Shown piece by piece: positions 43,686 through 47,360 of a stretch of DNA of 64,000 bases. A program made the translations under genes and the position numbers. Location: positions 17,174,001 through 17,238,000 of the forward strand of contig CATNEN010000001.1 in the NCBI GenBank assembly GCA_950097015.1, written 5' to 3'. The stretch is from Macrostomum hystrix. Its lineage: Eukaryota; Animalia; Platyhelminthes. Below the pieces are notes generated by a model. It saw nothing but the letters and a program-made list of their open reading frames with translations. It was not told where the DNA came from and ran no database searches. Within the stretch, counting starts at the first letter, position 1, and each line of letters starts with the position of its first letter.

Positions 43686-44881
43686 ATGTTCCTGGCTAGA
43701 AGCGGCTTCGGCGCCACTCTGGCCTCGGTTGCTAGGGGCAATGGATTGCGTCAGTTGTGCTGCGCAGCCGCTGGCAACTATAAAAACATTCTTGTAGAAA
43801 AGAAAGGCGACAAGAATCAGGTCGGCTTTGTCAGGCTGAATAGGCCGAAGGCTCTAAACTCGCTCTGTGACGACCTATTGCGAGAGCTCAACGTCGCTTT
43901 GAAAGCCTTCGATGTCGATCCAACTGTCAAGGTAAGTGGAGCTCCTACTTTTTCTAGAAGGTAAAATGCGAACTAGTCTACTATAAGTAAAAATATTAAC
44001 ATCTTATCACATCTTCGTTAATCAGATTTTTGTACTGAATACTGACGATACCCCTCGATAAATCATGCTACCCCTCGATAAATCATGCTACCCTATCGAT
44101 AAATCATGCTACCCCTCGATAAATCATGCTACCCCTCGATAAATCATGCTACCCCTCGATAAATCATACTACCCCTCGATAAATCATGCTACCCTTCGAT
44201 AATTTTTGCTACCACCTATATTTTTCAGCGATTTATTTTTGCCCATTCCTCTTCCAGGCCATTGTACTGACGGGTAGTACGAAGGCCTTCGCCGCTGGCG
44301 CCGACATCAAGGAGATGCAGCCGAAGACCTATTCCAGCGTGTTCGGCGGCAACTTCATCAACGACTGGACGGACATGCTGCGCATTCGCAAGCCAATCAT
44401 AGCGGCTGTGAATGGCTACGCACTGGGAGGCGGCTGCGAGTTGGCGATGATGTGCGACATTATCTACGCTGGCGAGTCGGCCAAGTTCGGCCAGCCGGAG
44501 ATCCGGTTGGGCACCATCCCTGGCGCTGGCGGTACACAGCGACTGCCCAGAGCTGTTGGCAAGAGCAAAGCCATGGAGCTGTGCCTCACTGGCGACATGA
44601 TCAGCGCCTCGGAGGCGCAGTCAGCCGGTCTGGTTAGCAAAGTGCTGCCAGTCGATAAGCTGGAGTCCGCAGCTATCGACCTGGCCGAACGCATCGGCAA
44701 GATGTCTCTGATGGCAATCTATGCCATTAAGGAGAGCATCAATGCCGCTTACGATTCGCCCCTGTCCCAGGGCCTGCTGCTGGAGCGGCGACTGTTCCAC
44801 GGCACATTCGGCACCAAGGATCGGGCCGAGGGAATGTCGGCCTTCACTGAGAAGCGAGCCGCCGATTTCAAGGACGAGTAG
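43686..44881 (+). CDS. ECHS1: Mitochondrial short-chain enoyl-CoA hydratase, 2 exons, 289 aa
   Basis: Exons 43686-43931 and 44258-44881. Presequence-like N-terminus; [52 protein letters not shown]. Confidence 0.97.
44051..44210. repeat. ~20-bp minisatellite (CCCCTCGATAAATCATGCTA)n in ECHS1 intron
   Basis: About 7 units visible. Confidence 0.92.
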
Positions 44882-45137
44882 AACCGGATTTGTTGACCTT
44901 CGCCATTCATAACTCACCCACTGTTAGCTTTGTTTACACCTATCCATTTTGAATGATAATGGTTATAAAATTTGTTATTTTTCAAATACACGATCGATCG
45001 ATTTAATTCTAGTTGATGTCATATTGTCTACTAGTAATGTGTAGCATGAAAAAAATGGATTTTTTCCTTGAACAGGCCCTCATTATTTCGAAGCGCAACA
45101 TTACATTGTTTCCGGAGGTTCTCTTAAATCTGCACTT

Positions 45138-45263
<126 letters not shown>

Positions 45264-45325
45264 GAGTTCTGTCCAGTTGCTAAAAGTAGAAACATCAACT
45301 TGACGGCAGTCGCTTCTGCCCGCAG

Positions 45326-46774
45326 ACGCAGCCGCGAGTCAGCCTTCCGCCGCTGCGTCCGCTTGCCGACTTTGCGCCGTTATTCGGCGAGGCTGGCAGG
45401 TTCCACCTGCCGGATTTGCTGTCGGAGTGGAGTCGCTGTTTAGAACGAATGCGGCACAATCTGGTGCTGTATCAGACTAACTACCTGCTCTGTCTGGTTA
45501 TTGGTTGGCTGCTGCTGCTGCTAGCCAGACCTGAGGAAGTTCTTGTAGGCCTGGCTGGCATCGGTGCTGTGCTGTGCCTGCTATTTGGCAGGCGCCGGTT
45601 TAGTTCTACTGGACAGGTTAAATCTCCCTTCTCGGGTTCAGTCCAAGGCAGACAATCTGTGTAGACAACCGGGTAGAACGACCACGGGGTATTTCAAAAA
45701 ATTTTCAAATGTGGGCATTTAACGATTCTCGGGTGGCAAAAATCACACAAATAGGCAAAATGGGCGGCTTTGAAAGTTTTTTCATCGTTAAGTGCGGAAA
45801 ATATTGTTCTATGTGGTGGACTTTCACGAAAATCGGTCATTCGGTTAGGGAGCTTTCGGGAAGTTGGCAGCGGGTATCTGAAATACCCCCGTGGAGTTTC
45901 TACTGGTAAATAATAATAATTAATAAATAATTGATTACACCTGTCCGATTGGGCCAGATGTGCAGCCGACGGCACAGCCGCAGCTATTGCGCGGCGCATC
46001 TGAAGGCTGCGTACGGCTGTTCAGTCCATGGACTGGGGGGACGCCACACCCACCTTCAATTATCCCAGCGGATGCTGGTACCCATTTAACAGCTGGGTGA
46101 ACTGAAGCAATGCAGAGTTAAGTGCCTTTGCTAAAGGACACAAATTGTTACGGTAGTCAGGAATCGAACCCCCGACCTTTAAGTCGCGAGTCCGACGCTC
46201 TAACCAGAAGGCTACAAGCTCTCTGTGAAAGCACTTCCCATCACTTCAGTTCACTTAGATGTCAAATTTGATGCAGCATTTGTTGAGTTACAACTTGGAG
46301 TTGGCGAAACTCCACCCCACACCTGTCCACGGACTGAACAGCTGTACACAGCCTTAGGAAGGGACGGCTTTGTTGAGTCTGTGAATGCTTGTGTTCGTCT
46401 ATGAATTAGGAGTTTTGACCCAGTTTCGATCGATTCCTTAATAATCTTATTAAATTATTTGCTATGCAGAGTTTTTAAGAGCCGAGAAATCGAATAGTCT
46501 ATGGTTGAAACCCATAATTTCAACTCAGGCTGCGCGAGCACTACCATTGGCCAGCTGTTCAATATTGCTATTATCCTACCTGCTCAAACCGGTGCTAATT
46601 GTGCTGGGGTCGGCTGTCTCAATGCTGCTCATGTGCCTGTTGCACTCGCTACTTCTTCGTCGGCGTCAGAAAGATTTGGCATTGTTAAGGGTGTCTGCTG
46701 TTGCTAAGGCGGTTGCTAAGGCAGGCGGCGGCTCCCCGACGGTCACGCCCATGGAGCTGCTGCTGGCCGTATGA
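45326..46774 (+). CDS. PRA1 family protein (PRAF2/ARL6IP5-like), 2 exons, no genomic start codon
   Basis: Exons 45326-45616 and 46529-46774 (phase 0). TQPRVSLPPLRPLADF...RFHLPD...RMRHNLVLYQTNY, hydrophobic segments, LLHSLL, TPMELLL; ~179 aa with an added Met. Confidence 0.85.
45671..45905. mobile_element. MITE with imperfect ~25-bp TIRs in PRAF intron
   Basis: GTAGAACGACCACGGGGTATTTCA ... TGAAATACCCCCGTGGAGTTTCTAC; partial inverted copy at ~56397-56545. Confidence 0.75.
45908..46222 (-). mobile_element. tRNA-derived CORE-like SINE, family 1, full length, abutting the MITE
   Basis: Highly similar to 13439-13759, including the (ATT)n tail and B-box. Confidence 0.9.
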
Positions 46775-46904
46775 TCTCAATGGCCCTTATGAATTAAACT
46801 TCGCCAGTCTGAAAGTATCCATCCACTCAACAGATTGGATTGATTCCCAATGTTTGATTCCAAACTTACAATTGTAAGATTTCATAATAATTCTTTCATC
46901 ATCA

Positions 46905-47360
46905 GGTTTCACGGTTCCTGAAACTTCACTGTTCCTGAAGTTTCAGTATTCCTGAAGTTTTACTCTTCCTGAAGTTTCAGTATTCCTGAAGTTTTACTCT
47001 TCCCGAAGTTTCACTGTTCCTGAAGTTTCACTCTTCCTGAAGTTTCACTGTTCCTGAAGTTTCACTCTTCCTGAAGTTTCGCTGTTACTGAAGTTTCGCT
47101 GTTACTGAAGTTTCGCTGTTACTGAAGTTTCGCTGTTACTGAAGTTTCACTATTCCTGAAGTTTCCGGCTTCCTGAAGTTTCCGGCTTCCTGAAGTTTCA
47201 CTGCTCCTGAAGTTTCACTCTCCCTGAAGTTTCAGGCTTCCTGAAGTTTCAGGCTTCTTGAAGTTTCAGGCTTCCTGAAGTTTCACTGTTCCTGAAGTTT
47301 CACTCTCCCTGAAGTTTTCCTTTCAGTATTCCTTTCTGCAACTCCCTGAAGTTTCAGACT
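46905..47360. repeat. 17-bp minisatellite (CCTGAAGTTTCACTGTT)n downstream of PRAF
   Basis: Same core TGAAGTTTC as 42250-43233. Confidence 0.95.

Follow-up and report, generated by a model that had tools for sequence, protein, structure and literature searches.

A PRA1-family gene of Macrostomum hystrix that probably takes its start codon from a trans-spliced leader

Results

Gene content of the locus

The window analysed here is a stretch of 64,000 nucleotides of the flatworm Macrostomum hystrix (contig CATNEN010000001.1, positions 17,174,001 to 17,238,000 of the forward strand), and coordinates without a contig name are counted from its first letter. The locus under study holds the end of one gene and, in the same orientation, a second gene without a start codon at its conserved N-terminus. 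Its features are the following:

44186 to 44882, plus strand: last exon and stop (TAG 44880-82) of an ECHS1-like gene, upstream and co-oriented
44883 to 45325, plus strand: spacer, presumed outron, 443 nt
45281 to 45289, plus strand: in-frame stops TAA 45281-83 and TAG 45287-89, which close the frame upstream of exon 1
45310 to 45325, plus strand: pyrimidine-rich tract and 3' acceptor CGCTTCTGCCCGCAG, the proposed trans-splice acceptor
45326 to 45616, plus strand: exon 1, 97 codons, phase 0, no ATG of its own at the 5' end
45449 to 45451, plus strand: first in-frame genomic ATG, codon 42 of exon 1, inside the conserved domain
45617 to 46528, plus strand: intron, GT..AG, 912 nt, cDNA-confirmed
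46529 to 46774, plus strand: exon 2, 81 codons to 46771, stop TGA 46772-74

Judged by its sequence, the gene with exon 1 at 45326 is a small gene of the membrane-traffic family PRA1 (PRAF-like). Of its two pairs of hydrophobic segments, the first is encoded in exon 1, together with the PRA1 N-terminal motif, and the second in exon 2, together with the TPMELLL tail; the hydrophobic stretches of both exons are visible on reading the sequence. The two exons were searched separately, never as the joined two-exon protein. Exon 1 matched the Pfam family PRA1 (PF03208) with 45.9 bits against a cut-off of 30.1 (E 5e-12), covering profile positions 2-78 of 143, and since the match begins at profile position 2, the N-terminus of the protein coincides with the start of exon 1. 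Exon 2 alone gave no Pfam PRA1 match; it is collinear in alignment with a Macrostomum lignano PRA1 protein and with a paralogue from the M. hystrix genome, including the TPMELLL tail. The gene thus shares with the PRAF2/PRAF3-like, four-pass ER/Golgi membrane proteins of this family the N-terminal motif L-x-P-L-R-x-L-x-D-F ... R-F-x-L-P, the NLLxYQTNY block, two putative hydrophobic hairpins and the TPMxxLL tail, while it differs from them in an exon 2 below Pfam significance, a short inter-hairpin loop and DNA without a start codon. A comparison of exon 1 and of the 112-codon open frame 45326-45661 with the protein collection returned no match and is uninformative, the M. hystrix protein being evidently absent there at those lengths.

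The upstream neighbour has its own ATG at 43686 and appears to encode an enoyl-CoA hydratase (ECHS1-like), recognised by eye from a crotonase motif in its open frame. The original prediction had described an ECHS1 stop close upstream and a (CAGA)n repeat in the gap, and both are present: the stop codon at 44880-82 lies 443 nt before the end of the acceptor, and (CAGA)32 occupies 45138-45263. The rest of the spacer is AT-rich (GC 0.35 over 44883-45137), and neither a tRNA nor an Rfam family was found in the spacer or in the intron. The distance from the ECHS1 stop to the PRA1 acceptor, 317 nt when the microsatellite is subtracted, falls within the repeat-adjusted criterion of 1 kb given for M. 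lignano operons (PMC8629364). The PRA1 gene may be the downstream cistron of a polycistron with ECHS1.

The acceptor claimed at 45324-25 and the conserved start in phase 0 at 45326 can both be read from the DNA, where ACG CAG CCG... begins at codon position 1 of the PRA1 frame directly behind the acceptor. Translation from 45287 gives a stop followed by KHQLDGSRFCPQ and then TQPRVSLPPLRPLADFAPLFGEAGRFHLPDL...; the TAG reported at this position is therefore present, and the TAA at 45281-83 is a second in-frame stop besides it. No ATG occurs in any frame over 45056-45448, and the statement that none lies between the TAG and the domain holds, with the first in-frame ATG at codon 42. A start at that codon would drop the conserved LPPLRPLADF...RFHLPDL part, and within exon 1 there is no genomic in-frame AUG able to give the conserved N-terminus. 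The absence of ATG over such short stretches is in itself not unusual (dinucleotide shuffles, P 0.4-0.7), and we rejected it as a statistical signal; the missing start codon goes beyond chance because RNA confirms the exon boundary and the N-termini of homologues align there.

Transcript evidence at the boundary of exon 1

The search for sequencing runs yielded four small runs of 2020, all from one study, which hold 33-39% of the sampled words, approximately the share made up by the two exons, and one run of 2024 that matches the intron repeat only. Contigs of the runs X1-X4 were aligned to 45263-46900. X2, X3 and X4 each have one contig with the joint 45613>46526 (cut +3, GT..AG), and as these contigs carry the 45616/46529 splice, they represent cDNA and confirm the intron together with its atypical donor CAG/GTTAAA (here and below the stroke marks the splice junction). 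The 3' UTR of the gene reaches at least 46900.

At the 5' side, contig 9 of X2 (671 nt) and contig 16 of X3 (379 nt) are free of mismatches from 45325 to the donor and carry, 5' of 45325, a further 6 (X2) and 23 (X3) letters that do not match the aligned stretch. None of the runs gives any depth over 45263-45317, although some unspliced signal is visible where the intron begins. Because the contigs begin at the acceptor with foreign letters, the first genomic exon does start directly behind the acceptor, and because the match starts at 45325 and not at 45326, the mRNA base before ACG is a G, as in ...ATG. A foreign sequence ending in G is thus joined to the acceptor in the mRNA. The RNA boundary that the original prediction had placed at 45326 was recovered in the cDNA contigs of three runs, which match from 45325 and carry short foreign 5' sequence. 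We take the foreign letters to be the spliced leader (SL). With an alignment that starts at 45263, any cis exon located farther upstream would likewise appear as foreign letters. In any contig of the three runs the leader-side letters number at most 24, a limit that would be expected where an assembly graph with k=31 meets a leader common to thousands of mRNAs.

Over 45588-45702, low-depth contigs of X2-X4 read through the donor and continue from exon 1 for ~90 nt into the intron. They indicate some unspliced or intron-retaining RNA, and there are none on the outron side over 45263-45317.

Spliced leader RNA genes

The SL of M. hystrix, as given in the leader description of Wiberg et al. 2023 (PMC10468722), is 43 nt long and ends in ...AATTTATTGCATG (...CTCAATTTATTGCATG), and the same description calls its terminal ATG a likely translation start codon. 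We found SL RNA genes as at least 19 exact copies of ...GAAGACTCAATTTATTGCATG/GTAAGACACCG (...TTGCATG/GTAAG) in the assembly of 220,453,370 bases in 42 contigs, with hairpins and a U-rich Sm-like site downstream of each leader copy. The assumption that this organism possesses an AUG-terminated leader is borne out both by these genomic copies and by the ATG at the end of the published SL. The leader holds a single ATG, which is its last three bases. A trans-spliced PRA1 mRNA would read ...TTATTGCATG 5' of 45326, i.e. ...CAATTTATTGCAT(G), and the junction would give ...UGC AUG ACG CAG CCG, with this AUG as the first of the mRNA and in frame. As read from the sequence, its Kozak context is poor, with T at -3 and A at +4.

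There is no SL copy within the 64-kb window; one exact SL RNA gene copy lies on the same contig at C1:16047927, ~1.1 Mb upstream. Canonical copies on contigs C15, C17 and C42 are spaced ~11.7 kb apart in a long tandem repeat (e.g. C15:8225-11250), where a U1 snRNA gene (Rfam 151.7 bits) adjoins them. Another arrangement is found at C39:12667898-12753120 (locus C39:12667700-12669800), where a 927-bp unit is repeated in tandem at least 70 times. Every unit combines a 5S rRNA gene (Rfam 117.9 bits) with an SL-RNA-like gene whose Sm site, AUUUUUG, is canonical and whose leader is a variant, ...GAAGACTCTCTTTTTTGCATG/GTAAG. The variant leader differs from the SL published for M. hystrix, its end before G being ...CTCTTTTTTGCAT(G).

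Relatives of the protein

A full HMMER search with exon 1 collected 33 relatives. In their alignment (A1), the Met of five of them, P0006, P0011, P0018, P0019 and P0031, shares a column with the first residue of exon 1, so that a Met added before the T would stand where the family starts, the SL AUG lying one codon ahead. Residues F16, R25, F26, P29 and R41 are invariant in the family, and a start at 45449 would remove these columns. The best match is a PRA1 family protein of M. lignano with 62% identity from residue 2. All five records of the M. lignano cluster lack an initial Met (QPSASKKPQIRLP..., SASKK..., ASKK...), and three NCBI loci of this species, Mlig025373.g1, Mlig027101.g1 and Mlig008806.g1, are flagged 'partial'; the comparison with a related species, suggested along with the original prediction, therefore revealed orthologues that are likewise Met-less. 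According to the annotation procedure outlined in PMC5730564, M. lignano transcripts are trimmed at mapped trans-splice sites before ORFs are called, and a CDS open at the 5' end is what an SL-donated start would leave.

The M. hystrix genome contains a paralogue at C26:813031-813582 on the minus strand, which is intronless, 183 aa long and 42% identical. It begins MRLAKLRSLDEF with its own ATG, four columns later in A1, and may represent either an old retrocopy or a second member of the family (PRAF3-like). A short tandem repeat of GGTGGGAATGTAGCTCTAGTCCA-like units lies upstream of it.

Discussion

The missing ATG could be supplied by an exon in the spacer between ECHS1 and PRA1 that is spliced in cis, an explanation that we regard as unlikely. 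We enumerated all ATG-to-GT open frames of the spacer that join 45326 in phase. Exons ending at 45270 or 45285 are ruled out by the zero cDNA depth, and exons with a final A or T (45033, 44973) because the contigs call for a G before 45326. The best remaining candidate extends from an ATG at 45016, 45037, 45046 or 45055 to 45117, with the donor GAG/GTTCTC and a 208-nt intron containing (CAGA)n, and would add ~21-34 residues before TQPRV; the other is a trivial ATG/GTTATA at 44961. The exon to 45117 has an open frame in the right phase and its last base is the G demanded by the contigs (...TTTCCGGAG, i.e. ...TTTCCGGA(G)), both candidates lie upstream of the aligned stretch (45263-46900), some PRA1 homologues (P0003, P0005) have longer N-termini, and the confirmed donor CAG/GTTAAA shows that weak-looking donors are used in this gene. 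However, neither candidate donor fits the GT[A/G]AG reported in the splice-site description of PMC8629364, and both exons would lie in AT-rich sequence, the one to 45117 having a GC content of 0.375 versus 0.58 for exon 1. Moreover, no contig in three runs extends more than 24 letters past the junction, and three transcript-based models of M. lignano lack such an exon and were left partial.

It is considerably less probable that the main product is an N-truncated protein of ~137 aa started at 45449, with the upstream open frame serving as 5' UTR. This ATG is the first genomic one in frame, no out-of-frame ATG lies between 45326 and 45448, and it could be reached by leaky scanning if ribosomes miss a poorly placed SL AUG; such a start nevertheless deletes PRA1 profile positions 2 to ~40 together with the five invariant residues, and the stretch before 45449 is conserved as protein with M. 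lignano, unlike a UTR. Least probable of all, by a small step, is that an mRNA without trans-splicing is translated from a non-AUG codon, or that the gene is a decaying pseudogene. ACG is a near-cognate start codon and the one at 45326 could be used as such, but the cDNA contigs leave the genomic sequence upstream of 45325 uncovered, so that the mRNA does not pass through it, and a pseudogene is at odds with a gene that is expressed, correctly spliced, intact in frame and conserved.

The reading that we prefer, with a probability of about 0.84, is that the PRA1 gene takes its start codon from the AUG that ends the trans-spliced leader. It brings together the observed gene model, cDNA boundary, foreign 5' letters, SL RNA genes and reading frame, and the original prediction is supported in its core by the AUG-ending leader, the coincidence of the acceptor with the 5' boundary of the cDNA, the AUG in frame and the Met-less M. 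lignano orthologues. The pre-mRNA would be made either from its own promoter or as the downstream gene of a polycistron with ECHS1, and would be trans-spliced at the acceptor ending at 45325, whereby the SL would be joined directly to the ACG at 45326. The only AUG of the leader would become the first AUG of the mRNA, in frame, and ribosomes presumably start there. Translation would then yield M+TQPRVSLPPLRPLADF..., a protein with the predicted N-terminus (Ac-)MTQPRVSLPPLR and the full length of ~179 aa that had been foreseen (97 + 81 residues and the donated Met). The stronger claim that the gene is obligately dependent on trans-splicing would hold for the full-length protein and does not extend beyond it.

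An AUG is found at the 3' end of all flatworm leaders (PMC12582326). Its use as an initiator was shown in Schistosoma by Cheng et al. 2006 (J Biol Chem 281:733; cited in PMC9851317 and PMC12582326), whose work, as summarised in PMC9851317, counts more than 40 Schistosoma cDNAs that need the SL AUG. The mRNAs of this kind ('slORFs', PMC9851317) and the PRA1 gene have in common a leader AUG directly before the donor GU, a phase-0 acceptor directly before the conserved second codon, no genomic in-frame ATG and a stop upstream. Unlike in the slORFs, the host is a free-living macrostomorph and not Schistosoma, and both the SL on the PRA1 mRNA and its translation are here deduced. The leader sequence is the same as in the SL descriptions for Macrostomum (M. 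lignano PMC8629364, PMC5730564; M. hystrix and M. cliftonense PMC10468722), which likewise include an SL RNA gene with a GTAAG donor and an Sm-like site, whereas the PRA1 acceptor CCGCAG fits the Macrostomum motif [T/C]TNCAG in part only. The trans-splicing sections of these three papers count trans-spliced genes, note the terminal ATG and contain no list of genes that depend on it.

A PRA1 gene started from the SL is a further example of a mechanism known in flatworms since 2006 and introduces no new principle. Its main value lies in annotation, for gene finders truncate PRA1 at Met42 or mark it as partial, as has happened at three M. lignano loci, and a rule that adds a Met wherever an SL acceptor stands in phase 0 would repair such Macrostomum models. 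The gene adds a conserved housekeeping member to the set that needs the leader AUG for a full-length product, and the case speaks for a functional role of the AUG conserved at the end of flatworm leaders. We also raise, as a doubtful extension, that the Met-less start common to M. hystrix and M. lignano reflects a dependence on trans-splicing older than the split of the two species, and that the arrangement works as a switch in which the SL mRNA gives the complete protein and leaky scanning gives the codon-42 form without the conserved motif.

Repeats around the gene

The intron of the PRA1 gene harbours a high-copy dispersed repeat at ~45813-46360, represented in all four runs, including one of another organism label, by hundreds of contigs with a depth in the thousands, many variants and rearranged joints. 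Within this repeat, the minus strand at ~46140-46215 resembles a tRNA that is recognised by neither ARAGORN nor Rfam. The repeat probably represents a SINE or MITE family, either transcribed itself or carried within many transcripts. Downstream of the gene, at 46906-47317, lies a minisatellite with the 17-bp unit GTTTCACTGTTCCTGAA in 24 copies with 87% matches. Its start, ~130 nt past the PRA1 stop, coincides with or closely follows the end of the 3' UTR contigs.
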